The notes under the pieces: model-generated | Seen by the model: the letters and a program-made list of their open reading frames with translations, nothing else | What the model was told of the DNA's origin: nothing | Database searches by the model: none | Assembly (NCBI GenBank): GCA_051294905.1 | Contig: CM119373.1 | Coordinates: 34,038,001-34,102,000, forward strand | Reading direction: 5' to 3' | From: Botryllus schlosseri | Lineage: Eukaryota | Length of the DNA: 64,000 nucleotides | Shown: positions 2,504 through 54,591 of the stretch, piece by piece | Numbering within the stretch: the first letter of the stretch is position 1 | How the letters are laid out: each line of letters starts with the position of its first letter | Made by a program: the position numbers and the translations under genes

Positions 2504-3844
2504 TCAAAGTTCCTTCGTATCAAAATGGACCAGCATGTGGTTCCTCAAACAAGAACTCCTGACAAATAACCTGCCACATATTTCACACCCAAAATCTTTG
2601 ACGTCCAAATGGCTCTTGATATGTTGCCTCACAGAATGTTTTTGAACGAACGCTTGACCACACGTTTCGCACTTGAAATCTTTCATATTCAGATGGATAC
2701 GCATATGCCTATTCAAAGAACACTTTTGGTTAAATGAAAGGTCGCATCGCTCGCATTTAAAAGCTTTCACGCCATAATGAATGAGCATGTGTCGCTACAG
2801 GGATATCTTTTGACTAAAATATTTGCCACAGACTTCACACTCGAATTTCACGCCCAAATGAATGAGAGTGTGTTTTTCCAGATACAGCAGGGTGGTGAAC
2901 TATTTTCCACATGTCTCACACTCATGTCTCTCATCTTTAGTATGGGAATGGATGTGCATGTGGCGCGCTAAATCCGACCCTCGCTTGAAAGATTTGCCGC
3001 ATATTTCACACGAGAAATTATTCACATCCAAATGGATTGCCATATGTCTTTTCAAATTACTCTCTCTGCTAAATGATGAGCCGCATATCTCACACTTGAA
3101 CTCTATATCATCAGTGTGTGTCATTGAATGATTTCTCAGACAATCTTTCTGCCGGAAAAGTTTACCACATACTTGGCACTCAAAGCTTCTGGCAGAGTGG
3201 ATGAGCATATGTGATTTCAAACCTGTCTTTGAGCAGACTAATTTCGCGCAAATTTTGCACTCGTATTTTTTGACACTGGTAACGGTATGGACGTTCCTAT
3301 GATTTCTCAAATCTTTCTTTGTGAAGAATGATCTTTCACAAATTTCCCATTTGAAACCTTTCATGTCAAAATATCGCAGCACGTGATTCTTCAAACCTCT
3401 CATTTCTTTCAGAATTTTGCCGCAAATTTCGCACGTGAAATTTTTAGTGCTGGAATGGAACTGTATGTGCTTTTTCAGATCATCTCTTTGTCCGAAGGGC
3501 AGAGCACAAGTTCGACAGGTCACAGTTTCTGCAGCAGTATGGAGCAGTAGGTGATGAGTCAAATTCCATTTAGAGGACAATGATTTGAAACAAACGCCAC
3601 ATTGGAAAGGCTTCATGCCAGCATATATCCGTGAGTGTTCACTTGAACAGGATTTACTGGAAGAGGGTTTAAAACAAAATTCACATTTGAAAAGGCTCAC
3701 AGTACAAGTGTGAGTCAGCAAGTGCTTTTCCAAATCACTTTTTGTGCTGTAGAATCGACCGTAAACGTCACAATTCGTGGTATGGTGTGGCGGAATGAAT
3801 ATAGTGTTCCTCGTGACCCGCTTTCTAGAGGAATGACTTGCCAC
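2504..3844 (-). pseudogene. 15-finger C2H2 zinc-finger pseudogene (ZF1)
   Basis: ORFs 2900-3844 and 2504-2788 are in frame; in-frame TAG stops at 2900-2902 and 2795-2797; +1 insertion at 3772-3773 relative to paralogues; Zn-ligand losses (VCG to VYG, FKC to FKW, His to Tyr in fingers 2 and 5). Confidence 0.9.
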
Positions 3845-4528
3845 AAATTTGACAAAGCGTCTTTATCTGTGTGCTCCTCTACGGACTTGCTGAGTGTCCT
3901 GTACCTAAAACTACCGCCAATTGTTCCAATTCATAAGTCAATCAGAGTTTGAAAATTCGAGGTATTGACGAACGACTATGGAAGCAGAGCTGCAGCAGAG
4001 ATATGCCAATCTAATAATCTTTACGCCTCAATCTGCAAAAGTAAGCATATCTGTTATTAAAATTGTGTAAATTTTGTTTGTGGAAACCGATTGCAGCAGT
4101 GATCAAATGATATTTATCTTCAGGGCTGACATAACACAGTATTATTCCAATTAGAATTGACTGCAAAAGTGCAGTGTGACAGTCGCGTTTTTCCAGCTCG
4201 TCAAAAAATGGTCGAAACACATCAAGGGGTGCCAAGAAGTTCACAAATCTCGAAGTTTTCTCTGTAACGTCAGTAACATATTGATTGGCTCACGTGAGCT
4301 CAACACTACAAAATTGAGGGAAATTGGAAAGGAAGGAACACAAAGTCTGAATCAGCTGGGCTTACAGATAGTGGGAAAGCGTCATTAACACAGTTTTATA
4401 AAACAACAGGTAACGGACAAAAAACTAAAGAAAAGATCCATGCTTTCTCGCAAGATGTATAAAACCAAACGCAAGATGTGTGCAAAATCACTAATTTTAA
4501 AAATTTGATCCGTTAACGTATTGTGGCA

Positions 4529-6181
4529 TCACAAGATGATTGCCGAAGCATGGATTCTATTATTCAGATATTCCGGGTCATCACTATGGAAGTCTATCAA
4601 CGTACTCAACAAATTAGTTTTCGGATTGAACTCGAGGATATCATCGCAGAGCATTTCATCATTGTATCCACCACATATGTATATCTTTCCGAGAATACAA
4701 TGAGTTTTGAAATCCATTCGCTTCCATCCACGCTTTTGAACTGGAATTATCGTCCACATACATTCATCACTGGGTAGCCAAAGAATGTCGGTTGCATACA
4801 TACAGTTCACAGTTTTTCCGCCAAGAAGGTAGATGGCCTTATTCAATGTACATGCACTTGCATCAGTTCTCTCAACTGGCAATGATGGTCCACGCGACCA
4901 AGTAGATACTGAAAAGTTGTAACATTCCACATCCAGCACAAATTTTGATGAAAATATATCAAAACCACCAATTGCGTAAAGCTTATCCTTAGATATAGTG
5001 AAGGCAGATGCATCCACAATGGATTGCATGTTAGGAAGCTTCGACCACTTGTTATTGATTGTGTCATATTGGGCCAAAGACTCGATCCCATTATGACTTG
5101 CTAAGTAAAATTTCCCTGATTTATGTGCAACTACTTCACCGTATCGGAATTCTGGTAATGGACGTTCAAGTTTTATCCAGGGTGAATGATATTCAAGAAG
5201 ATTACGACGGTACAAATCAGAATTATTATCAATGACATATATGTAGCAGTCCATCACAACTATTGCATTAAATCGTGTCATACTATCTTCATAATTGAAA
5301 TGCCGCTGCTCGGTCAAAGACTTTCTGTCCATGTCAAACCACATAAAACGTTTAACTTTTCCATTCGTCATTATAATGCCAGGAGTGCAGTCACCTTTGT
5401 AATCACTGGCTTCTACATCTGATCTCTCAGGTAGTGACTTCATGATGTGCATCATGCATTCGGTGGATTTGGCAACAGTTGGTTGCTGAGATAAAAATTT
5501 ACGATAGTAGACGGGGATTTTTTCCAGGTCGATGTGCTTCAGTAAATCAAAAAGTTGATCGGCACGATCTAAGTCGTCATTGACCCAAATCATTGACGCT
5601 TTGCATTTAATAACATCCAACACATGCAAATCTTCTAAGGAAATCAAATCCTCCAGGAAATCAAACTCAAGTTCCTTGAAATAGGATGTTTTCATGATCG
5701 AATGAAAGTGATCGCGAGCAAAACTTCTGCATGCTTGCTGTAACTGCTGACAGAAATACTTCTCAGCAATATACCTGGTATCGAAAAACGAGTCTATGTC
5801 CAGATTTTCCTCCAGGTAAAGTGACATTGCATCGCATACTTTATCAATTCCAAACAAATGCGCCACATACATTAGTTTTTCCGTATTTCGAATCAGAAAC
5901 AAGGCTTGTCCAGTGTACATGATTTCAATACAGGTCATCACACATTCAGGGTCTACATGCTTCAAATCAACCATTCCCAACATGTTCTCTTTTGTGTCGT
6001 GATTGAGCATCTTAGCAAAATACTCAGAACTTGCGGCAATGACGCACTTGTGAACAGAGATCTTTTTTTCTCCCGCTTTGATAACGAAGTCACAATACTG
6101 TTGATTGATTCTGAACTCGTCGAATTTCGATAGAATGTCGAGGGCATGACCCGTCTTGCCAATATTCAGAAGATGTTCCAT
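4529..6181 (-). CDS. BTB-BACK-Kelch (KLHL-like) protein, 550 aa from MEHLLNIG (Kelch1; ORF open to 6262)
   Basis: BTB (YCDFVIKAGEKKISVHKCVIAASSEYF), BACK (CKASMIWVNDDLDR), Kelch GG repeats (AIGG, LLGG, ICGG); MEHLL start shared by all paralogues. Confidence 0.93.
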   Translation of the reverse strand: MEHLLNIGKTGHALDILSKFDEFRINQQYCDFVIKAGEKKISVHKCVIAASSEYFAKMLNHDTKENMLGMVDLKHVDPECVMTCIEIMYTGQALFLIRNTEKLMYVAHLFGIDKVCDAMSLYLEENLDIDSFFDTRYIAEKYFCQQLQQACRSFARDHFHSIMKTSYFKELEFDFLEDLISLEDLHVLDVIKCKASMIWVNDDLDRADQLFDLLKHIDLEKIPVYYRKFLSQQPTVAKSTECMMHIMKSLPERSDVEASDYKGDCTPGIIMTNGKVKRFMWFDMDRKSLTEQRHFNYEDSMTRFNAIVVMDCYIYVIDNNSDLYRRNLLEYHSPWIKLERPLPEFRYGEVVAHKSGKFYLASHNGIESLAQYDTINNKWSKLPNMQSIVDASAFTISKDKLYAIGGFDIFSSKFVLDVECYNFSVSTWSRGPSLPVERTDASACTLNKAIYLLGGKTVNCMYATDILWLPSDECMWTIIPVQKRGWKRMDFKTHCILGKIYICGGYNDEMLCDDILEFNPKTNLLSTLIDFHSDDPEYLNNRIHASAIIL

Positions 6182-18826: not shown

Positions 18827-20124
18827 CGCAGTTGATAGTAAAAATATATAGTTCACTTAAAAACATGAGAATAATATCTGAAATTGTAACATCATACACA
18901 TGGTGAGTAGATTGTCGTACGATGTTTATGCAACGATATCATTACATTCCTAACATAAGGATAGAGAAGAAAATGTAATCCCTAATGGCAGCGAGGAGTG
19001 ATATCCTTGGGCTTAGGTGACAGAAGTTGGAATAAGATACACAAATTGAATGTTACAGATATAAGCACATTTTGGGTGTCAACAAAGGACAAGAAAAAAA
19101 TCCCTTCTCATGTCTACGAGAGCAATAAAACACGGAGAAGTACAGTGGATACAAAAAGATGGCATAAAAGTGGGCTAGCCTGTAAAAGGCATATGACGCT
19201 ACGGGAAAATTATAAACATTACATTAAAATCACAATCTTCAACTTCAAATGGCGACTAACAATTATTCAGATTTCAAGGTGGTGCAAATGAATTGTCAGT
19301 TGAGGGATTTATGGGGGAAGCCATTGTAACCACTGAGCTTCTATGGCTAAAGAAGAAAATTTTGATAACCAGTCAGATATTTACTTTGAGTTGCTGTGTT
19401 TACTTGAAACGTCACACAAGCTAGGCTAACAAATAGGTGATATAACGCATGGATATAAGGCAGTCATGCACACTAAACCACTGATAATCGGCAGAAAACT
19501 AAAAGCAAGAGCCATGCTTTCTTGCCAGATATCGCCTATGCGAAATCAAAATCAAGCAATATACAATATCACTCATTTGAAAAACCCGGATTTGAATAAA
19601 ATAGTATTTACGGTGGACACCATTACAATAAATAATTAAAGAATTGGCCACCATAAATACTATTTTCTTATTAATCCAAATATTTCGACCGCAGTAACTC
19701 TGCTTCCACTGGTTAGAATTGAACCAAATTTGGTGAACATCGTTTCTATAGACAACCTAACACTTTCATGGGGCGAACAAAACATTTTCAATTTATTTTT
19801 TATTTATTTTTATGTAATGGATGGAAACTTTCCTCTCCTGTACCGGTGCGGCTACTGGCTTGAATTGAACAAAATTTGGTACTGTAACCTAACAATTTTA
19901 TCAAGTAGCCAGTACGATTTGAAAAAAAAAGTCATATTTGAACACCCCTAGTGAACATGCTTAACAGTGGGCATTGGGTTATCGATTCCCAGACCATAAA
20001 TCTCAATCTGAAAGCTTTAATAGCAGTACATGCCAGTGAAGGAATAACAATTGCTGATCCTCAGTACACAATTCAAATTCATGTTTGGCCGGGTAAGCCG
20101 TCATTTTAAATTTCATATTTTCAA

Positions 20125-23100
20125 TTATTTTGTATCAAAATGGATGTGCATGTGGTTTTCCAAAGTAGTTTTACGGTTGAACGACATCCTGCATATTTCA
20201 CACTCAAAATCTTTCACCCCAAGATGTATCTTCATGTGTTGTTTCAAAGAATTCTTTTGGACGAAAGAATGACCACATGTTTCGCACTTGAAATTTTTAA
20301 TATTCAAATGGATCAGCATATGTCGATTCAACGAACACTTTTGGTTGAACGATTTGCCACATCTATCACACTTGAAATCTTTCGTACCGTAATGGATGAT
20401 CGAGTGGCGTTCCAAAGGTGCTTTGTGAGCGAATGATTTTCCGCATATTGTACACAGAAAATTTTTCGCACATACATGGACAGTACGAGTGTGTAGTTCC
20501 AAAGATTCCATTGTGCTGTACAATTTGCCGCAAATCATGCACTCGTAATCACAGAAATGAATGAGCATGTGTTTTTTTAAAATCTCGTCTCGTTTGAATG
20601 ATTTTCCACATACTTCACAAGTGACTTTTTTGACTTTTTTAACATTGAGATGGAGTAGTATATGATGGTTTAAGGCATCAAGTCGGTGAAATGATAAGTT
20701 GCATATCTTGCAGTGGAATTTTTTTACATCTGTGTGTGTCCTCCTATGCAGTCTTAAATTGCGTGGATTGCAGAAAGTCTTTCCACAGACATCACACTTG
20801 AATCGTTCTATGGCCAAGTGGATTCGCATATGTGCCCTCAATGTTGCTTTCGTGCAGAAGGGTTTTGCACATATTTCACACTCACGATTTCTCCCACAAA
20901 TATGGCTGGTCATATGTACTTTTAGTAGTTTCTTCGTCTGGAATGATTTTCCACAAATTTCACATTGTACATTTTTCACGCTAAAATGACTCATAATGTG
21001 GCATCTCAGGCTTCTCTTTGTCGTCAATACTTTGCCGCAAAGTTCGCACGTGTAATTTTTAGTACCGGAATGGAACAGCATGTGTTTTCCGAAATCACCA
21101 CTCTGACTGAAGGACAATCCGCAAGTTTTACAGATGTAAGCGGTTACGTCGGAATGGATTAGCAGATGTTCTGTCAAATCACTGTTTTCGGAAAAGGATT
21201 CGCCACAAACTCCGCATTTGGGGTATCTCACAGTTGCATGAGTCAGTAGATGTTCTTCCAAAGAATATTTTCCGTGGAACATGATATATCTCAACTTTCG
21301 TTTGCAGTAATATGTTCAATTCCGCAACAATGGCTCATTATAATTGAACACTAGTCGACCGTGACTGATGTCGCGCTCCGCTCGTAGTCGCCAGGCTTCA
21401 CGCTTACGCGGGAGCTTAACGTTGTTTGCTGCATTTCTTTATCCTTTCAGATCGTAGTGTGATTGGGGTTATTACCTATTAGCTTGCAATAAAACTGTAG
21501 TCACACTCATACTGTGTATTGCGTGGGATTTATTAATGGCGACGAGGACAAATCGGATATACTATCGCAACGCAACGTAACCCCAATGTCGGAACAAGAA
21601 TCCAAAGCTTCAATCGATCGATTCGATCCAGAACATCATCGCAGTAATGTTCATGACGCATTCTGTGAGTTCGTACGCACGTTTCAATATGAATACGCTG
21701 CAATGGCCAAAGAACCTCCTGCCGCAGAGCAGGACAAAGAGGTCTGGATCGAAGGCCATAAAACAAAAATATTCTTGGGTCGGTTTTCTTCACGAAATTT
21801 TCAGAGAGATTTTGAAGATACCGTACCAGAAAACGACCGTAGCACACTTAAATTCAAAGATCTGGTGAAATGTATGAAGTCCCGGTATGAGCCAACCCGG
21901 AACTATACTCTTGCGAATTACAAGTTTCACCGTCTGTCTCAGGCAATGGATGAGAGCTTCGACGGATTCGTCCACCGCTTGAGGCGTGAAGCGAAGGCAT
22001 GCAAATTTGTATGTGAAAATGCAAACTGCAATGTCTCCGACATTATGATCAGGGATCAAATAATAGTCGGCATCAAATCAGATGACATACGGACAAATGC
22101 GCTCAAGAACCAATGGGATCTGAAGGCCTTGGTAGAGAACGGCCGTAAGATAGAAGCGGCTTCACACTCCGCCCAGTTGATCAAGAATGAAACTGAGGCT
22201 GCAGGAGCGTCTGACATTTGTCGTGTGAAACCCAAACAACGCTATCACAAGCATAGGGGTTCAGGTGCAGATGCACAACACAAGGGTCGTTGCAAAACAT
22301 GCTCCTCTAACATCTGTGAAGGAGGAAAATCGTGTGTAGCAAGAAACATGACATGTCATAAGTGTGGTAAAGAAGGCCACTTCCGAGGATCAACAGCATG
22401 CAAGAAAAACAAACGCGCGAAGGCAAACCGCGTAGAATCCGAAAGTGACGTCAGCAGTTCATCAGATGACGACGCTGATTCAGTAAGCGATGCCAGCTCT
22501 GATGCGTCGCGAAAGAAAATGCAGAGCAGGAAAAAGAAAGGAATCAAGAGAGTCAACCAATCGCAGCCTTTCCGCAAGGTGCGTAAGGTATCAAAACCAA
22601 GATACCGGGTGAAGGTTGCAATGGCAGGAAAACCTGTAAAAGCCTATGCGGACACGGGTGCCGATTTGAATGTGATGTCGGCAAAGAGGGCAGCAAAGCT
22701 TAAACTACGTCTCCGATCCACGAAAACGTACATAAAGCCTTATGGGTCGAAGCCAATCCAATGCTGTGGACGCTATGAAGGTTTTGTAACTTTCAAAAGT
22801 TCTGTGGTGAGTGCTCGCTTCTATATCGTCCCTGGTAAAGTAGAGACTCTACTTAGTGGGCGACTGTGTGAAAAGCTCGGCATCATCAAATTCGATGGCG
22901 ACATGGAGACAGAAATGTCTCGCAAAGTGAACAGGGTTGCGAAAGGGGACAAGCTAAAAGCAGATGTGATGAGGGCATATCCATCTGTGTTCACAGGCAT
23001 AGGAACATTGAAGGATCATGAGGTTTCGTTCTATATCGATCCGGAGGTTCCACCAGTGGCCCAAGCCATACGTCCAATCCCTTTTCATCTGCAGGACAAG

Positions 23101-26100
23101 TTTCAGAATCTAATATCACAACTGGAAAGTGATGGAATAATCGAAGAGCACACAGGTCCAGCGCCATGGGTTTCCAATCCTGTGCTTACGCCGAAAAGCG
23201 ATGGCAGCCTACGCATGACGATCGACCTGAGGCAAGTCAACCAGGCGATCAAGGCTACTAACATTCCTATACCAAGAGTGGAGGAAATCAAAGCAAGGCT
23301 GGCAGGCAGCAAAGTATTCAGCAAACTGGACTTTAAATCAGCTTTCCACCAATTGCTGCTGGATGAGCAGTCGAAAGCAGTCACTGTATTCCATGCTGGC
23401 CATAGACTCATGCGTTACCGAAAGCTCACAATGGGTGCAAAACCAGCATCAGGCGAGCTCACGAGAGCTCTGATCCCGCTCTTTGCTAATATCAAAGGGG
23501 CCCATGTCATTCATGATGACGTCATCATATCTGGAGAGACTCCTCAGCAACATGACCTAGCTCTCGAAAAGGTCATGAATCGCATCCAGGACGCTGGAAT
23601 GACCCTGAACGCTGACAAATGTGTTTTCAAAAAGCCAGAGATACCTTTCTGGGGTATGATAGTGACTAATAAAGGTATTAAACCAGATCCGGAGAAGGTC
23701 AAAGCTCTGGAGGACGCTTCCCGTCCGAAGTCAAAAGAGGAAGTGATGTCATTCTTGTGCTTCGTTCAATCATTTGGGGACTTCATCTCGCACCTCTCAA
23801 GCAAAACGAAGCACCTCCGCCAATTGACTCAAAAGCATCAAAGGTTCAGGTGGACATCAGAATGCAGCAAGGAATTTAAAAGCCTAAAAAAGGCTCTTAA
23901 AGCAGATACCGCACTGCGATTCTTTGACGTCAAGGCGAAGACATACATATTTGTGGATGCTCATGTGTCAGGCTTGTCTGCAATTCTGGCCCAAGGTCCA
24001 AGCGCAAAGGAATCTAGTATTGTGGCGTTCGCAAGTCGATCCACACGACCGGAAGAAACACGGTATCCGCAGCTAGACTTGGAAGCCATGGCAGTAGACT
24101 TTGGTTTGAGAAGATTCCGCCACTACGTCACTGGAGGACCAGAAGTACTGGTTGTAACGGACCATAAACCGTTAGAGGGCATATTCAAGAACCACAGGAA
24201 AGGCTCTATCCGTACCGACCGTATCAAGATGCGGCATCAAGATATAGCCTACAAGGTGGTGTGGGAGAAAGGTGTTCTAAATCCAGCCGATTACCTTTCA
24301 AGGCATGCCCAGCCAATCGAGTTAGCCCCGCGTTCATGGCAAAATGAAGCATGTGAGTTGGAACGCACTGTTCTCATGATCCAACATGCACCCTACACGG
24401 AATCGTTGTGTATGGATCGCATCATCAAGGAGACAAAGAAAGATAGCCTCCTTAAGCGACTTAGAAAAAGCATCCGGAAGGGTCACATATCAAAAAATGA
24501 CCCGGATCTAAAAGTATTCCGCAAATTTCAAGATCAGTTAACCATCTCGAATGGTTTGGTGCTGAAACAGGACAAGATCATTCTCCCAGAAAAGCTCTGG
24601 GAAACAGCCATCAACAAAGCACACCAAGGAGGTCATCCAGGAATGTGCAACCTGAAGCGACGCATCCGCAGTCACTTCTGGATCAAAGGCTTGAATGAGT
24701 TGGTGGAACAGAAAATCAAATCCTGTACGTTGTGCCAGCAGTTTACACTGCCAGGCAGTAAACAGCCACAGAAACTCATTATGCCGCCTAAACAACCCTG
24801 GCATGAAGTCAGCATAGATTTGTTTGGGCCAATGCCGGATAAACGTCACGCAGTGGTGGTGCAAGACCTGACGACACGGTTTCCGGATGCGACAATCGTC
24901 AAAAGTACCGCAGCTAAGCATGTTATTCCTGCAATAGCGAAAACATACGCTCATTATGGTCAACCTAATACTCATAGGACTGACAATGGCCCTCCGTTCA
25001 ATTCGAAAGAATTTGCTGAATTTTCAAGTAAGCACGGAATCGACCACAAAAAGACGTATCCGTACCATCCACAAGCCAACCCTGTAGAGACTTTTATGAA
25101 GCCTTTGGGCAAGGCGATGAAAATTGCGTATGCGCAAGGTGTGGACAAACAAACGGCACTGCAAGATTTCCTCATTGGATACAGATCAACCCCCCACATA
25201 TCAACCGGGGAATCGCCAGGGGACTTGATGTTGAAAGGAGGGTTCCGAAACGACTTTCCAAGGAAAGTACTCAACAACGACCAAGTACAGAAAGCCTTGC
25301 ACCAAGACCGTCAAACGAAATTACAAAGGCAACAAGTTATCAACAGTTCAAACAAGCGACAACCAAAACATTTTCTAATGGGGCAGCAAGTCATGACTAG
25401 AAACCACAAAAGAAACAAATTTGACCCCATATTTGGCCCTGAGCTCTACACTGTCACGGAGATCTTCAATGACGGCGTTGAACTGATCAACGCATCAACT
25501 GGTAAGCGGTATCGACGTCATTTCAATGATATCAAACCTTATTATGGAGATGCGCTCACAAAACAAGTGCATGCCAATCCACCCATTGAATGGTGGCATC
25601 CGACGGCGGACGAAGTTGAACATTCGGTAAGCCAGCATCCTGAGGAACCAACAACCGTGCCCGAGCCGGTGATCGTCTCTCAGGAACCAGAGGTGAATGA
25701 TGAGGAGCCAGCGATCATCTCTCAAGAGGCGAGCGACGACGTGCCGAACACTCCTCCCGACCGCACGGCTTTGGCCCTAAGCCGTCTGGCCGATTTTAAC
25801 TCGCCCGGTTTTCTGGAAATGTACTGAGCCTATTTGTCTTCCCAAAAGGGGGAAGTATTGATATATCTCAACTTTCGTTTGCAGTAATATGTTCAATTCC
25901 GCAACAATGGCTCATTATAATTGAACACTAGTCGACCGTGACTGATGTCGCGCTCCGCTCGTAGTCGCCAGGCTTCACGCTTACGCGGGAGCTTAACGTT
26001 GTTTGCTGCATTTCTTTATCCTTTCAGATCGTAGTGTGATTGGGGTTATTACCTATTAGCTTGCAATAAAACTGTAGTCACACTCATACTGTGTATTGCG

Positions 26101-26175
26101 TGGGATTTATTAGAACAATCCACCACAAACTTGACAAAGCATCTCTAAGCGCTCTCCTTCTTCAACTTGTGGCAT
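20125..26175 (-). CDS. Divergent 14-finger C2H2 gene (ZF3), 404 aa when the LTR element is removed; interrupted in finger 1
   Basis: Joining 26175-26118 + one GAACA + 21276-20125 restores MPQVEEGERLEMLCQVCGGLFHGKYSLEEHLLTH... without frameshift; the 13 downstream fingers are intact (20125-21282). Confidence 0.85.
21282..21535 (+). repeat. 5' LTR
   Basis: TGATATATC...GGATTTATTA; identical by eye to 25859-26112; contains AATAAA. Confidence 0.95.
21537..21548 (+). promoter_or_regulatory. Primer-binding site, probably tRNA-Ser(GCU)
   Basis: TGGCGACGAGGA, 1 nt after the 5' LTR; complementary to the ...UCCUCGUCGCCA 3' end known for tRNA-Ser(GCU). Confidence 0.75.
21586..25827 (+). CDS. Gag-Pol polyprotein, 1413 aa from first in-frame ATG
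   Basis: Zinc knuckle CHKCGKEGHFRGSTAC; protease ADTGAD; RT with IHDD; RNase H (FVDAH, TDHKPL); integrase HHCC plus D..DNG..E core; no stop or frameshift. Confidence 0.95.
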   Translation: MSEQESKASIDRFDPEHHRSNVHDAFCEFVRTFQYEYAAMAKEPPAAEQDKEVWIEGHKTKIFLGRFSSRNFQRDFEDTVPENDRSTLKFKDLVKCMKSRYEPTRNYTLANYKFHRLSQAMDESFDGFVHRLRREAKACKFVCENANCNVSDIMIRDQIIVGIKSDDIRTNALKNQWDLKALVENGRKIEAASHSAQLIKNETEAAGASDICRVKPKQRYHKHRGSGADAQHKGRCKTCSSNICEGGKSCVARNMTCHKCGKEGHFRGSTACKKNKRAKANRVESESDVSSSSDDDADSVSDASSDASRKKMQSRKKKGIKRVNQSQPFRKVRKVSKPRYRVKVAMAGKPVKAYADTGADLNVMSAKRAAKLKLRLRSTKTYIKPYGSKPIQCCGRYEGFVTFKSSVVSARFYIVPGKVETLLSGRLCEKLGIIKFDGDMETEMSRKVNRVAKGDKLKADVMRAYPSVFTGIGTLKDHEVSFYIDPEVPPVAQAIRPIPFHLQDKFQNLISQLESDGIIEEHTGPAPWVSNPVLTPKSDGSLRMTIDLRQVNQAIKATNIPIPRVEEIKARLAGSKVFSKLDFKSAFHQLLLDEQSKAVTVFHAGHRLMRYRKLTMGAKPASGELTRALIPLFANIKGAHVIHDDVIISGETPQQHDLALEKVMNRIQDAGMTLNADKCVFKKPEIPFWGMIVTNKGIKPDPEKVKALEDASRPKSKEEVMSFLCFVQSFGDFISHLSSKTKHLRQLTQKHQRFRWTSECSKEFKSLKKALKADTALRFFDVKAKTYIFVDAHVSGLSAILAQGPSAKESSIVAFASRSTRPEETRYPQLDLEAMAVDFGLRRFRHYVTGGPEVLVVTDHKPLEGIFKNHRKGSIRTDRIKMRHQDIAYKVVWEKGVLNPADYLSRHAQPIELAPRSWQNEACELERTVLMIQHAPYTESLCMDRIIKETKKDSLLKRLRKSIRKGHISKNDPDLKVFRKFQDQLTISNGLVLKQDKIILPEKLWETAINKAHQGGHPGMCNLKRRIRSHFWIKGLNELVEQKIKSCTLCQQFTLPGSKQPQKLIMPPKQPWHEVSIDLFGPMPDKRHAVVVQDLTTRFPDATIVKSTAAKHVIPAIAKTYAHYGQPNTHRTDNGPPFNSKEFAEFSSKHGIDHKKTYPYHPQANPVETFMKPLGKAMKIAYAQGVDKQTALQDFLIGYRSTPHISTGESPGDLMLKGGFRNDFPRKVLNNDQVQKALHQDRQTKLQRQQVINSSNKRQPKHFLMGQQVMTRNHKRNKFDPIFGPELYTVTEIFNDGVELINASTGKRYRRHFNDIKPYYGDALTKQVHANPPIEWWHPTADEVEHSVSQHPEEPTTVPEPVIVSQEPEVNDEEPAIISQEASDDVPNTPPDRTALALSRLADFNSPGFLEMY
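25844..25855 (+). promoter_or_regulatory. Polypurine tract
   Basis: AAAAGGGGGAAG ending 3 nt before the 3' LTR. Confidence 0.85.
25859..26112 (+). repeat. 3' LTR
   Basis: Direct repeat of 21282-21535, followed by TSD GAACA. Confidence 0.95.
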
Positions 26176-26640
26176 TTAGAGTGTATAGTTACTTGTACCC
26201 GCACGTAGGCTATTGTTATTTCGATACTTCCTAATCAATAAAAGCACACACACACGCATTATAAACAATATATCAGAAACTTCTCCCGAAAGTCCAGAGG
26301 GAATGAAATATTTCTGATACAATAGATAGCATTTGCATCTGTAATTGCCTTCAACTTGATGTAACGTAGTAAACTGAACCATCACAAGACTTCAATACTA
26401 GCAAAACACAATACTTAAAGCAGGAGTATCAAACTCAAAATGGTCTAAGGCCACTTTTCCAATTCTGCAGCGGTCGCAGGCCGTGACAATTCAAATGCAA
26501 GAAAAATTGGGCTTTACATGAGTACACCTCTGAAAAAAAATAATATCATGATCATCACTTTCAGTCTATTTTAAACTACGAGCTGAAAATGATATCTGGT
26601 AACACTTTTCACCGACAAAAAATCAGTGTTGGGGCTAGAT

Positions 26641-27729
26641 CAGGGGTTCTCAGCCCTTTCTTGCGTGGTAATCGACGGCGCTGATATGCCTATTTCTCTG
26701 AAATATGTGCATTTTTCTCCTGATTTACTGATGAAATTGAAACATAAACATTTCGAGGCATTAAGTCGTGCACTCGTGCCCCTTCTAGCTCCCCCAATTC
26801 GGGGTTTGGGTGCGGCAGTTACGGCTCTGGTAGATCATATACTAAAACTTTTAAGTATTTAATGATCGTCCGCTGCTCTATTAGCTTCGCGAAACACAAT
26901 GATCGAATTCCCGCAGACACTGTGTGATTGGGATTTTAGTTCCACCATTGAGGGGAATAGTATAATCATTCTGGGCCAGCTTCAAACAATTCCTTGGTGA
27001 ATGGGGTACTACAGAGGAGTGAAGAAAGATTTTCTTATTATGTATGCTGTACAATGTACATTGTATGTCACGTACTGAACCAACTGAGGTTGCGATGTCG
27101 GAATATTCAATCCAGTGATACTATCAATTCATGTGACTCTTACATTATGTACATTGATTTCCAGGCATGACATTTTAAACAAAACAGACTACAAATATTA
27201 ATGCGCTCCGCTGAATTCTCAATCCATTACTATTTGTTGCGGTGGTGCAGTATACCTCCACCAGAATTTGCTAATAATTTGCAATTATTGTCATTTTTAA
27301 CTTACAATAATACGACCTGCCGAAGTGCAGTGAATCTATACATCAATTACACTTCATTCCGAGTTTATTGCACACCCCTTTCAACGGCATACGACATATG
27401 ACCCTGCCGGAATACTTGGTTACTTCAGCATAACCTTCCAGGTATTATATACGTAAAATTATTTTAGTTGCTGTTAGCCATAGGTAGTCATAGCCAGTGG
27501 AAAAAGCCACCGTTTCTGCCTCCCATTTTCGACTTGAAATGCTACTCCATACGTACCACTACGTCTCATCAGAGTCGGATGAAAATCTTTACATAGCCCA
27601 CGTATAATCAACTAATATCAATTTATTTTTTAGAGATTAACACTCCAAATATCACTAGACTTAAAATTTTCCAAATAGCTCTGCGGCCCACCTCAAATGC
27701 TCTTGCGGTCCACCCTTTGAGAACCCCTG
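26641..27729. mobile_element. Non-autonomous hAT element, 1089 bp
   Basis: 12-bp TIR CAGGGGTTCTCA / TGAGAACCCCTG; 8-bp TSD GGCTAGAT / GGCTGGAT (7 of 8). Confidence 0.85.
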
Positions 27730-28870
27730 GGCTGGATAAATCCGATACCATAGCTGGAACGCTGTTAGAATCTCTCCACGTAAAGGTGGAGATTGATGTT
27801 CTAAGTATCTCAGTCTTGGCAGTATCTGGGCCATTGCATGTCAATGGAGGCTGTTGCCTTCATCGAAGCCGTTTCGGGTGAGGAAGAGTGATGTTGGGCA
27901 CAATAGCTTACCTTATTTTGAACAACAACAATATTTTAAGACTGAATTTCATTTCATCATTTCAAAATGCTTTCGTAAGCTTTTTTCCGGAATTTCAAAT
28001 CACGCCGTTGGCCGCAAATTATCACCAAGCGGTCCCGGTGTTGGTTACCCCTGATTTAAAGGGATATGGTGAATAAAGATAAAGTCCAAAATTGCCCTAC
28101 GGTGCGAGAAATGCATAAGCTGAAGGCAATATACGCAACCTGAGCACCAGCAATTAATTACTGATGAAGCGTCGATCTGAAGATGAATTGAGGGACAGGA
28201 ACATAATACTGTGGAGGGAAAGCCAATGATACTGCAGAAAAGAATAGACAAGCGTGAAATGGTCAAGAATCATTGTATGTAAGCCTACTGTAGCAGTCGA
28301 CCTGCTGCAAAATACACTCTAGTGATTTGAGTTAATACATTTATGTCATGACTCTCTAGTTATACCGGATAACGACCTGGCTGAATTCTTTTCCAGATCG
28401 CGAGCATAGACGCAGGTTCAAGGAGTCAGCTATTTTATCACAGAAACTTGTACAATGTAGATTGATCAAGTTTTAACCATATTGCGGTCTAGTCAAAATA
28501 ACATATAAGATGAAAATAAGAAAATGGCTAAACCAGGACCTACGACTAACAAGTTTCCCACACTGGAATGAGATATGCAGACTGCTTCCCTGTGGGGAAT
28601 GTATAATCAATTGCTTCACTGCATGACCCAATTGACAGGAAGCTCTAATTGATTTAGTTCAACACAATGCTTTTCAATGTATGACCTAATTTGCATTGGC
28701 TGTATAATTGGCGCCCAACTGTGTTACTGTTACAGTCCCCTATATAATATTGTGGGGCTTTCCATGAAGCAGATTATTCATGTAAATATCCTACAGGGCA
28801 GAGCTATAATATAGTAATGGAATATACCTTCTAACACTAGCTGGCAGCTTCTCTGCATTATACTATACAG

Positions 28871-28992
28871 CAGGGGTGTCAAACAATTCGTAAATGCCTT
28901 TTGAATGTCGACAGTCGCCAACATATAATAATTAAATTACGTATCGACAGCCGCACAAATTTCTTTCTACGCCAGCAGGTTGGGCACCCCTG
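28871..28992. mobile_element. 122-bp hAT mini-MITE at the truncation point of a Kelch gene
   Basis: Imperfect TIR CAGGGGTGTCAAAC / GTTGGGCACCCCTG; right flank continues Kelch BTB sequence, no matching TSD on the left. Confidence 0.7.
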
Positions 28993-29205
28993 CTTTAAAT
29001 CAACCACTTCGAACCTGTTCTCGTTGGAGTCGTGGTTGAGTATCGCAGCAAAATAATAAGAACTTACGGCAATGTGAACAGAGATCACCTTTTCTGGTGC
29101 TTTGAATATGAAGTCACAATACTGTTGATTGATTCTTAACTCGTCAAATTTTGATGGAATGTCACCGGCATGACCTGTCGTGCCAATATTCAAAAGATGC
29201 TCCAT
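28993..29205 (-). pseudogene. Truncated BTB-Kelch gene (N-terminal BTB only)
   Basis: MEHLLNIGTTGHAGDIPSKFDELRINQQYCDF...VVDLK, then cut by the mini-MITE. Confidence 0.85.
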
Positions 29206-30059
29206 CACAGTTTACTGGTTAATAGCCAACCCAAAATGTATAGCTCATTCAATAACTTTAAGATTAAAGGTCATCAAAATCGGATTCTGTAAAATGATAG
29301 TAACGGTCAATACTGTTGTATGCAAAGATGAGTTTGGTCATGAAGGAATATCAACATCAACAGGCATTGAAAGGCAAAATATCTTGGATAGAATATTTAT
29401 TCAACAATTTCGTCGTATTCCTGACAAATGGACAAAAGAGAAAATGTATTCGTCCGTGTCAGCGAGGATAAATATTCTTGGGCTCTACAAATTTGCTTTA
29501 TACACCAATTAAACAGAGATGGGCGATACATTTTATGCTTTCGGTGCATGAACATAATTGATCTTATTCATTGGGTCACAGAAGATATCATTATTTGTAC
29601 AAATTAAAGCATACCGAGCCAGCCGCATTTTGGATTTTGATGAAGTGTAAGAAAAAGTCCGAGCATTGTTCCGAGGATCGAAAGTGATGAAATGCAGGAA
29701 TACAGATTGGATCGCAATACATGAAGATGACATAAAAGTGGACTAGCCCTGAAAAATCATACGACGGTACGAGGAATGCAAACATGTTACATTTAAATCA
29801 CCAGCCTAATCCCCAAATGCAGATGTTATCATTCTGATTTCACGCTTATGCAAATGAATATTGTGATGCCACTGCTATAAGACTATGAAAATATCAATTT
29901 CCACGAAGAGGGGCATAGCTCTTGCACAAGTATATCGTTCAAAAATATACGGCAACAGAAGTCTCAACAGTTTGAAGAAAATATCTCGTATGATAGAGGA
30001 AGCAAATATCTCGTATGATAGAGTTTTCAGTTTTTCCCGTTTGTGAAGTCACCAAAGAA

Positions 30060-52599: not shown

Positions 52600-54591
52600 T
52601 CACCTTGCCCCGCGCGGAACCATGCCCTTCACCCTTTCGACTAAATTCGCGAGTTTCAACGCAGGTCCTAGCTTCATGCTCATATATTTCACCGCGATCG
52701 AGCTATTGATCAGCATTAAAGCGGGGCCGTCTATTTCGTGGATTTGAAACAAACGCACCATCGGCGCTAGCGCCGAATCATGGTCTCGTACATAGTCTAT
52801 GACATCGCCAACTGTCCATTTTTCAGGGTTTCTGGAATGGCCTCGAGGGAGAGTGTCATCGCTAGGGAGGGCTAGGCCGCCGAATGGCCGGACTTCTGAT
52901 AATGCAGAAACGACTGGTTTATCATCGACGGTCGGTGGATTCGTCGTGGAGGACACAGTGTGTGATGATATTTTCTCCGTTGTCGAGTCAGGCGTCCCAC
53001 GGTCTTTACTCTCTGTCGTTTCTGCGTTCGGAGTGAACGCCAACGTCTCCCCCACGTCTTCGGCCCCCTGCACGGAACTATCCGGAAAGTTTGGTGTGCC
53101 GAATCTGGCTAGCTTGTTGTCCGAGGTGACCACGCTTTTCGGAGTCATTAAACGCGAAGGCCAGCCGTCGGTTGCCTTCTTTACGATGTCATCGCGAGCC
53201 AATCCGAACAAGCTTGGCGGCTGGTCTTTATCGGTGAAGCATGAAGATTTGTCTGCCGGAGAATTGGGCAGATTTAAATTCTTGTAGCTGGTAGCAAGCG
53301 GGGTGTCGCTTTGCTGCATTAATTGCTTTTTTGCTTTCGATCCTGCGCTTAGCAATTCGTCCTCTCCTAAAGAAGCGTATCGTTTCCTGCTGTTAGACAG
53401 TCTGCGATCGCGCTGTCGCAAATCTGTACTGTGAGAGTTTGGTTGTTTTATCTCGACTACAGATTCATCGATTTCGCTGTCTTCCGATTCTCGTTTTTCA
53501 GCTGTTTCGTCAGGATTTTCCTCGGAAGAATCAGAGGAATCCTCGGAAGAGACGGACGAGTCGCCCGTTTCAGACTCGGTGACCGAAGACGCGATAAGAG
53601 ATTGAGACGCGCGTGGCTGCGTGAAATTTTCAGAGTTTTTTTCGACGGTTTTAGGCTGTTTCGGTGATTGGTTCGTACGGGCGAGACGCACACGTGGTCT
53701 GTTTCGGGGCGTTTTAGACAGCGCTGGCTCGTATTTCAACGGGATAGCGGGCGTTTCTTGTGATTTTTGAATGTTTCTGTCAGCCTCCGACACATTTTGA
53801 GCGCCGCTACGAGTCTTCCTCCTAGCGTTCTCGGCTATAATTTTCAATTTATCCACCACAACGGGATTATCACCCTTAGAACCCGGATTACTCAAAGGGT
53901 GATCATTTTCCTCACACCAGCCTACAGGAAATAAGTCTCTCGACGTATAGTCGCACCAGTAATCCATAGCTCCACGCCATCCATCAAAAGCTACGAAGAC
54001 TTGATCGAGCTTTGTGTCTCCGATTGTGGCCGGGCATATAAGATACGGGTTTTTACGATCGACGGCTTCTAATTTCATGCCTACTTCGAATAAATTCGCT
54101 TCAGGTGGTGAGGGTTTGGGCAGAAAGCATTCTTTACCGGCTTTTATGCCTTTTTCACGAGTTTTTGCTAAGAACGTGGCCCACGTCGACATGTTTCTTG
54201 TAAAACCGAGCGGAGGTTGTAGTAAGACGCCTTTTTCTTCGTGTGTCCCAAGCGGGAATATATCTTCCGAGTCTATAAGTTTCCAAAAATCATTGCGATC
54301 GTCACCGCCGTCAAGGCGAATCAGTAGACGCGGACCTTGTAACGCCACGACAGTTGCCAGGCATATGGAAGTCGGATTCCTGGGATCTTGAGCTTCCAAT
54401 TTGTATTGCAGTTTGAAATTGTTGACGATTTTATCCGTTTGATTTTGGGTGAAGCAGTGTAACGGCGCCGCCGGAAGATTGCATAGTTGCAGATATTTGT
54501 CCCAGTTGAATCCGTCTTTGAAAAGGTTGACGTTGTCTTTCTTGAGCGAGCGGCGTACTTTGCCGCCACCCGACTTGGCAGTTTGACTCAT
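52600..54591 (-). CDS. Scm: Polycomb Sex comb on midleg (SCMH1/SCML2)-like protein: 2 MBT repeats, disordered linker, C-terminal SAM; single-exon CDS, 663 aa
   Basis: MBT motifs KLEAQDPRNPTSICLATV and KLEAVDRKNPYLICPATIG...FDGWRGAMDYWC...FPVGWC; SAM WTVGDV...HEIDGPAL...KYMSMKLGPALKL characteristic of the Scm family. Confidence 0.9.
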   Translation of the reverse strand: MSQTAKSGGGKVRRSLKKDNVNLFKDGFNWDKYLQLCNLPAAPLHCFTQNQTDKIVNNFKLQYKLEAQDPRNPTSICLATVVALQGPRLLIRLDGGDDRNDFWKLIDSEDIFPLGTHEEKGVLLQPPLGFTRNMSTWATFLAKTREKGIKAGKECFLPKPSPPEANLFEVGMKLEAVDRKNPYLICPATIGDTKLDQVFVAFDGWRGAMDYWCDYTSRDLFPVGWCEENDHPLSNPGSKGDNPVVVDKLKIIAENARRKTRSGAQNVSEADRNIQKSQETPAIPLKYEPALSKTPRNRPRVRLARTNQSPKQPKTVEKNSENFTQPRASQSLIASSVTESETGDSSVSSEDSSDSSEENPDETAEKRESEDSEIDESVVEIKQPNSHSTDLRQRDRRLSNSRKRYASLGEDELLSAGSKAKKQLMQQSDTPLATSYKNLNLPNSPADKSSCFTDKDQPPSLFGLARDDIVKKATDGWPSRLMTPKSVVTSDNKLARFGTPNFPDSSVQGAEDVGETLAFTPNAETTESKDRGTPDSTTEKISSHTVSSTTNPPTVDDKPVVSALSEVRPFGGLALPSDDTLPRGHSRNPEKWTVGDVIDYVRDHDSALAPMVRLFQIHEIDGPALMLINSSIAVKYMSMKLGPALKLANLVERVKGMVPRGAR

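Follow-up and report, generated by a model that had tools for sequence, protein, structure and literature searches.

An LTR retrotransposon in the first finger of ZF3

The window analysed here, a whole stretch of 64,000 nt from the tunicate Botryllus schlosseri (34,038,001-34,102,000 of contig CM119373.1, called C3 below, assembly GCA_051294905.1), lies within a minus-strand tandem array of paired BTB-BACK-Kelch and poly-C2H2 zinc-finger genes. One of the zinc-finger members, ZF3, is interrupted by a long terminal repeat (LTR) retrotransposon of 4,831 bp (21282-26112), which sits on the plus strand, antisense within the first finger of the gene. The minus-strand open frame left at one side of the element (20125-21294) translates as a run of C2H2 fingers (Pfam zf-C2H2, E=6.7e-65). 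The locus offers a clean, textbook case of a young LTR-retrotransposon insertion, whose prior state can be recovered from the flanks and from a paralog of the interrupted gene.

Rejoining the flanks and removing one copy of the duplicated GAACA restores an intronless minus-strand open reading frame (ORF) of 404 codons, without stop or frameshift. The pre-insertion protein begins MPQVEEGERLEMLCQVCGGLFHGKYSLEEH... at the native start (ATG 26175-26173) and carries 14 C2H2 fingers of the form C-x2-C-x12-H-x3-4-H, with all the Cys and His ligands kept. Counted as tandem C-x2-4-C-x12-H-x3-5-H units, which define a poly-C2H2 protein, these are 14 before the insertion and 13 complete ones when translation is read from a start codon at the junction that is described below; ZAD, KRAB, BTB and SCAN domains were sought in the ZF3 protein and none was found. 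The element entered between Leu20 and Phe21, past the CxxC of finger 1, and parted the gene into an orphaned 5' end (26113-26175, minus strand), with codons 1-21 (MPQVEEGERLEMLCQVCGGLF) and the CxxC of finger 1, and a 3' part (20125-21281, minus strand), with codons 21-404 and the stop, which extends from the second half of finger 1 through finger 14 and is recognised from its ORF, translation, Pfam match and colinearity with the paralog. When restored in silico, the site reads GGT GGA TTG TTC CAC on the minus strand (G-G-L-F-H), which bears out the TTG that the original prediction had placed there before the insertion. The predicted empty-site sequence is ...CCGTGGAACAATCCACC..., and an element-bearing product would be 4.83 kb longer.

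The element itself is bounded by two LTRs of 254 nt on the plus strand (5' LTR, 21282-21535; 3' LTR, 25859-26112), which are 100% identical and have the termini TGATAT...TTATTA. A target-site duplication of 5 bp, GAACA, stands on both sides, as the last bases of the left flank (21277-21281) and the first bases of the right flank (26113-26117). One nucleotide past the 5' LTR is the primer-binding site (21537-21548, plus strand; TGGCGACGAGGA), whose 12 nt are complementary to the 3' end of tRNA-Ser(GCU) including the CCA, and a pattern search of the same genome located tRNA-Ser(gct) genes that end in ...CCCATCCTCGTCG. At the other end, the polypurine tract region (25843-25858, plus strand) reads AAAAGGGGGAAG followed by TAT and adjoins the 3' LTR; GGAAGTAT also precedes the 3' LTRs in other copies of the element. 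A single gag-pol frame occupies 21586-25827 on the plus strand, from its first ATG at 21586 (listed ORF 21514-25827, 1,437 codons), and encodes in order a gag with a zinc knuckle, an aspartic protease, a reverse transcriptase, an RNase H and an integrase, where Pfam recognises Asp_protease_2 (residues 366-404), RVT_1 (560-716), RT_RNaseH_2 (780-874, with the RNase H region extending to 895), Integrase_H2C2 (1025-1077) and rve (1099-1186).

From the LTRs, duplication, primer site, polypurine tract and order of the pol domains, the sequence is assigned to a Ty3/gypsy-type LTR retrotransposon, apparently intact. Its layout, domain order, 5-bp duplication and size of ~4.8 kb are all like those of Ty3/gypsy (Metaviridae-type) elements that are primed by tRNA-Ser and have short LTRs around a single gag-pol ORF. 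It differs from the canonical Ty3/gypsy LTR in ending TG...TA instead of TG...CA, since TGATAT...TTATTA is found here and in the 18 other LTRs examined; such minor departures from TG...CA are frequent and do not decide whether an element belongs to this group. The single-ORF, short-LTR, tRNA-Ser-primed architecture recalls the Mag-like lineage, to which the element may belong. As regards the tRNA genes, tRNA-Ser(GCT) and tRNA-Ala(CGC) are arranged head to tail with 1 nt between them at both loci that were scanned (L003:1440-1595 and L004:1425-1582), and the tRNA-Ser 3'-end motif is clustered at many further loci, including C6:7.42-7.47 Mb and C8:4.10-4.13 Mb, where the pair may recur.

An element present in many copies might have been wrongly joined into ZF3 during assembly. 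The junctions speak decidedly otherwise, as the element is complete and carries a perfect 5-bp duplication, of the same length as at eight other loci of its family, and the flanks rejoin into an open frame of 404 codons that is colinear with the paralog. In a blastn comparison the two ZF3 flanks map to 3554-4948 and 4944-5041 of the paralogous locus (L001), overlapping by exactly 5 bp. A misjoin would not yield these features of duplication and flanks, so that an assembly artefact is effectively excluded and we give it practically no credence.

The family to which the element belongs was studied by comparing copies with one another. In the 495.5-Mb assembly it comprises about nine full-length copies, 95-99% identical to the one in ZF3, plus fragments and solo LTRs. 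The same TGATAT...TTATTA termini recur at eight further loci, seven of them full-length copies and the eighth a solo LTR, and every one has a 5-bp duplication of its own. The two LTRs of a copy differ at 0, 0, 0, 1, 1, 2 and 4 positions in the seven other full-length copies and at none of 254 nt in the ZF3 copy, which makes the latter very young and the family recently active. Among public proteins the closest ones, found with the pol region (residues 450-1250), are unnamed, at most 69% identical, and lie on contigs of ~4.4-5.3 kb.

The junctions and the truncated reading frame

At the left junction, the minus strand reads ...ATATC ATG TTC CAC, with GAGATATATC as the letters upstream. The ATG (21280-21282, minus strand) takes its A from the complement of the first base of the LTR, a T at 21282, and its TG from the duplication, replacing the TTG of Leu20. 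It opens an ORF of 385 aa that runs unbroken to a stop at 20125-20127 and retains 13 complete fingers; the nearest in-frame stop upstream, at 21318-21316, closes the ZF3 frame. Its context, GATATATCATGT, has an A at -3 and a T at +4. Here the original prediction was exact: the LTR's terminal T and the duplication do create an in-frame ATG, the frame behind it is open with 13 of the 14 fingers, and the identical LTRs, the GAACA duplication and the intact paralog show that an LTR insertion truncates ZF3.

How much should be read into this start codon is another matter. Any antisense insertion of this element whose first duplicated base is position 2 of an NTG codon has the same outcome, and ZF3 has 37 such codons; hence an in-frame junction ATG is expected from 37 of the 1,215 antisense insertion points in its coding sequence (3.0%). 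Past the junction the next in-frame Met is at position 87 of the protein as it was before the insertion, and so the new ATG merely extends what any 5'-truncated transcript could encode. At the opposite junction, the 3' LTR read antisense supplies TAA TAA right behind codon 21 of ZF3 (MPQVEEGERLEMLCQVCGGLF and then two stops). A stop at one junction and a start at the other are both consequences of how the LTR begins and ends (T...TTA, or TAA...A in antisense), and are not evidence of function. From the letters at the site, the ATG looks accidental, a by-product of an LTR starting with T and of a staggered cut inside a TTG codon.

For the truncated frame to be expressed, a transcript has to reach it. 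Sense read-through from the element is ruled out because the element is on the plus strand and ZF3 on the minus strand, and read-through from the native ZF3 promoter would meet TAA TAA after codon 21 and then 4.8 kb of antisense element. The routes left would be initiation from a conjectural antisense promoter of the 5' LTR, or trans-splicing, the host being a tunicate. Read antisense, the 5' LTR has three ATGs of its own (21510, 21434 and 21338), whose ORFs of 12, 27 and 15 codons all end upstream of the junction ATG; with these in the way, a transcript would have to begin within ~55 nt of the junction for the new ATG to be its first AUG.

Transcripts were sought in X23, a run of raw bulk RNA-seq of which ~6% was read (12.9 million records), made from animals of unspecified tissue and carrier genotype. 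Over ZF3 (20010-21173) the depth was zero and essentially no reads covered the junction, a weak test given that it covers ~6% of one run in which the neighbours are silent too. The neighbouring BTB-Kelch gene likewise had zero depth, and neighbouring intact genes were equally silent, so the silence of ZF3 in this run is not specific to ZF3. All 46 mapped reads fit only in part. Those on the LTR carry an A at 21454, where the ZF3 copy has a G, and thus derive from other copies, no more than that being implied: the G was considered as a private marker of the ZF3 copy and rejected, as six further LTRs of the young subfamily have it too.

An alternative to a simple knockout is incipient exaptation, as put forward in the original prediction, in which a 13-finger ZF3 would come under retrotransposon control, here by way of a cryptic promoter on the antisense strand of the 5' LTR. 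Besides the in-frame ATG, the unbroken 385-aa frame with its intact fingers and the A at -3, precedents in mouse argue for it. At Avy and other alleles, antisense promoters in the LTRs of intracisternal A particle (IAP) elements drive host genes; at Slc35d3-IAP, where the element lies antisense in exon 1, a fusion transcript is made whose two parts are in frame; Plcd3-mNab is possibly another allele with an antisense LTR promoter (PMC6466679). The likeness lies in an LTR element opposite to the gene and in or near its 5' end, the ZF3 insertion being at codon 20/21, and in the prospect that a transcript could begin in the LTR and run on into the gene; at Slc35d3-IAP the element supplies the 5' end, fused in frame. 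The likeness ends there, since chimeric transcripts are observed for the mouse alleles and none was found for ZF3 in the portion of X23 that was read, and since IAP is a class II endogenous retrovirus, to which the Ty3/gypsy element in ZF3, with its conjectural promoter, is unrelated. In a tunicate host, spliced-leader trans-splicing of an antisense read-through pre-mRNA near the junction would offer a second way in; such trans-splicing is reported to be widespread in ascidians (PMC1488885).

Against exaptation stand the lack of any X23 read over ZF3 or the junction, the three upstream ATGs with their short ORFs unless a transcript starts within the last ~55 nt, the ~3% of insertion points that yield such an ATG by chance, and an intact close paralog that removes the need. 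Moreover, an element so young, with no difference between its LTRs, has left no time for selection to act. Incipient exaptation is therefore regarded as highly improbable, and expression from the junction ATG by any route as about equally so. The fuller proposal, in which the antisense 5' LTR or a spliced leader would give carriers an mRNA with the junction ATG as its start of translation, and with it a 13-finger DNA-binding protein wherever the LTR is active, has at best a slender chance of being right. The truncation and the new ATG of the original prediction thus stand, together with the probable polymorphism discussed below, whereas its trimmed ZF3 under retrotransposon control is left without support, with the sense strand of the element pointing the wrong way, TAA TAA after codon 21 of the native frame, three ATGs ahead of the new one and no reads on ZF3 in the part of X23 that was read.

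The paralog and the status of the allele

A pattern search of the same genome for the empty site gave a single hit, in a paralog that lies 85 kb from ZF3 and has 2 mismatches to the pattern, and no copy on a second haplotype. This paralog (C3:33951791-33953005) has an intact, colinear ORF of 404 aa with an uninterrupted site, 93.4% nucleotide identity to ZF3 and a dN/dS of 0.40 against it; the ZF3 3' part is colinear with L001:3792-5006. A 100-nt stretch without differences between the two genes was noted at 20420-20520 of the window (coding positions 700-800). Together with a contig of run X6 that is a mosaic of ZF3 and the paralog, it hints at gene conversion between array members. That contig (20197-20844) carries the paralog base at 13 of its 15 listed variants, which cover 13 of the 32 paralog differences, and it was not used for ZF3; it would represent a haplotype shaped by gene conversion or else a chimeric contig.

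A candidate for an empty allele comes from run X8, another sample from another study, whose 441 Mb of contigs suggest whole-genome DNA. In a contig of 512 nt, with a depth of 86.5 like that of other single-copy pieces, the first 120 letters match 21162-21281. Over this span it has 2 differences from the window and the ZF3 base at 11 of the 13 sites that separate ZF3 from the paralog. The contig leaves the reference exactly at 21281 and runs on for 392 nt unlike the LTR. A ZF3-type contig without an LTR beyond 21281 makes the insertion probably polymorphic, as the original prediction had anticipated for this allele, and we consider it very probable that the contig represents the empty-site allele of ZF3.

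Whether there was still a function to lose may be asked, since ZF3 could already have been a silent or decaying duplicate in which the insertion was merely tolerated. The dN/dS of 0.40 against the nearest paralog suggests relaxed constraint. In addition, the paralogous unit lacks a high-copy repeat of 1.07 kb that stands ~0.5 kb ahead of the ZF3 start, the upstream BTB-Kelch partner of ZF3 is in fragments (~28879-29230) while the paralogous unit keeps a 550-aa ORF, and no RNA reads of X23 fall on ZF3. These signs are offset by a 404-codon frame that is open and 14 fingers that keep their ligands, by a dN/dS that is still below 1, and by the fact that the intact neighbours are just as silent in the one RNA run. 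We hold prior decay of ZF3 to be possible, though not probable; it is compatible with a loss-of-function insertion and differs from it on whether any function was lost.

Altogether, the locus is best explained by a Ty3/gypsy-type element that has inserted very recently, and antisense, into finger 1 of ZF3, one member of a large tandem array. The native start is left with a 21-residue peptide ended by the TAA TAA that the LTR supplies, and the 385-codon ORF is separated from its promoter by 4.8 kb. The loss would probably be buffered by the intact paralog, 93% identical, and by about two dozen more distant zinc-finger matches in the array (partial ones counted), and with such buffering the allele is likely near-neutral and still segregating. 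With considerable confidence we thus read it as a young, ordinary insertional allele of a redundant gene, in all likelihood one of loss of function.

Some observations weigh against this reading. The truncated ORF is fully open, and the A at -3 gives its ATG a tolerable context. Elsewhere, LTRs are known to carry antisense promoters (PMC6466679). The silence of ZF3 in X23 is the weak test already described, and the empty site in X8 was deduced from the point at which the contig departs, at 21281, rather than read from its letters. Furthermore, runs X5 and X6, which may or may not be RNA libraries, contain ZF3-like contigs of low depth that end short of the junction; if they are RNA, ZF3-like sequence would be transcribed at a low level.

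The array around ZF3 and the meaning of the insertion

Within window positions 1-45000, the array consists of pairs of an intronless BTB-BACK-Kelch ORF of ~550-580 aa and an intronless poly-C2H2 ORF of ~404-430 aa, and zinc-finger matches extend along C3 33.80-34.08 Mb, ~280 kb. In public protein data, the relatives of the 385-aa ORF are generic poly-zinc-finger proteins of at most 44% identity, with no full-length allele from the same species. The array would then be lineage-specific, given the lack of a ZF3 relative above 44% in the protein database. An exact look-up in the protein collection of ZF3, the paralog and three other proteins of the window found none of them. Elsewhere in the array, at L001:320-1856 (C3:33948319-33949855), a BTB-Kelch paralog is split into overlapping ORFs of 286 and 242 aa, which suggests a frameshifted pseudogene.

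Several other features flank the interrupted gene. Just upstream of the ZF3 start region is a unique segment of 209 bp (26210-26418), found nowhere else in the genome and missing from the paralog; it is an indel, of either polarity. Further upstream, the older interspersed repeat of ~1.07 kb (26662-27733) forms a gap in the alignment with the paralog and gave 1,693 first-look candidates genome-wide, the scored copies having 84-91% identity. The decayed BTB-Kelch remnant at 28879-29230 includes a 109-aa ORF like the BTB N-terminus, and the corresponding gene is intact, with 550 aa, in the paralogous unit. Just downstream of the ZF3 stop, an extremely high-copy repeat (19428-20009) reaches a summed depth of 77,000-174,000 in X8, compared with ~88 for single-copy sequence, and in many variant joints of the X8 contigs 19736-19883 is skipped. 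Finally, positions 52600-54591 of the minus strand encode an intronless Scm-like protein of 663 aa with MBT repeats, whose sole named full-length match is from Styela clava (49%), followed by Ciona, Clavelina and Phallusia over shorter spans; with ascidians heading its named matches, this protein too points to a tunicate host.

Set beside the segregating transposable-element knockouts found in tandem gene families, the ZF3 allele is alike in its identical LTRs, its exonic target, its nearby paralog and its probable presence/absence polymorphism. Nothing essential differs, the curiosity being an in-frame stop (TAA TAA) and an in-frame start (ATG) at the two junctions. It is of use as a marker of recent activity of the family, as a polymorphism that population studies can score by presence or absence, and as a natural knockout for one member of the array. 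Greater interest would arise only if carriers express the truncated protein from the LTR. In that case an LTR-driven ZF3 would be another instance of a known mechanism, and a still-segregating element would have been caught in the act of rewiring a zinc-finger gene.

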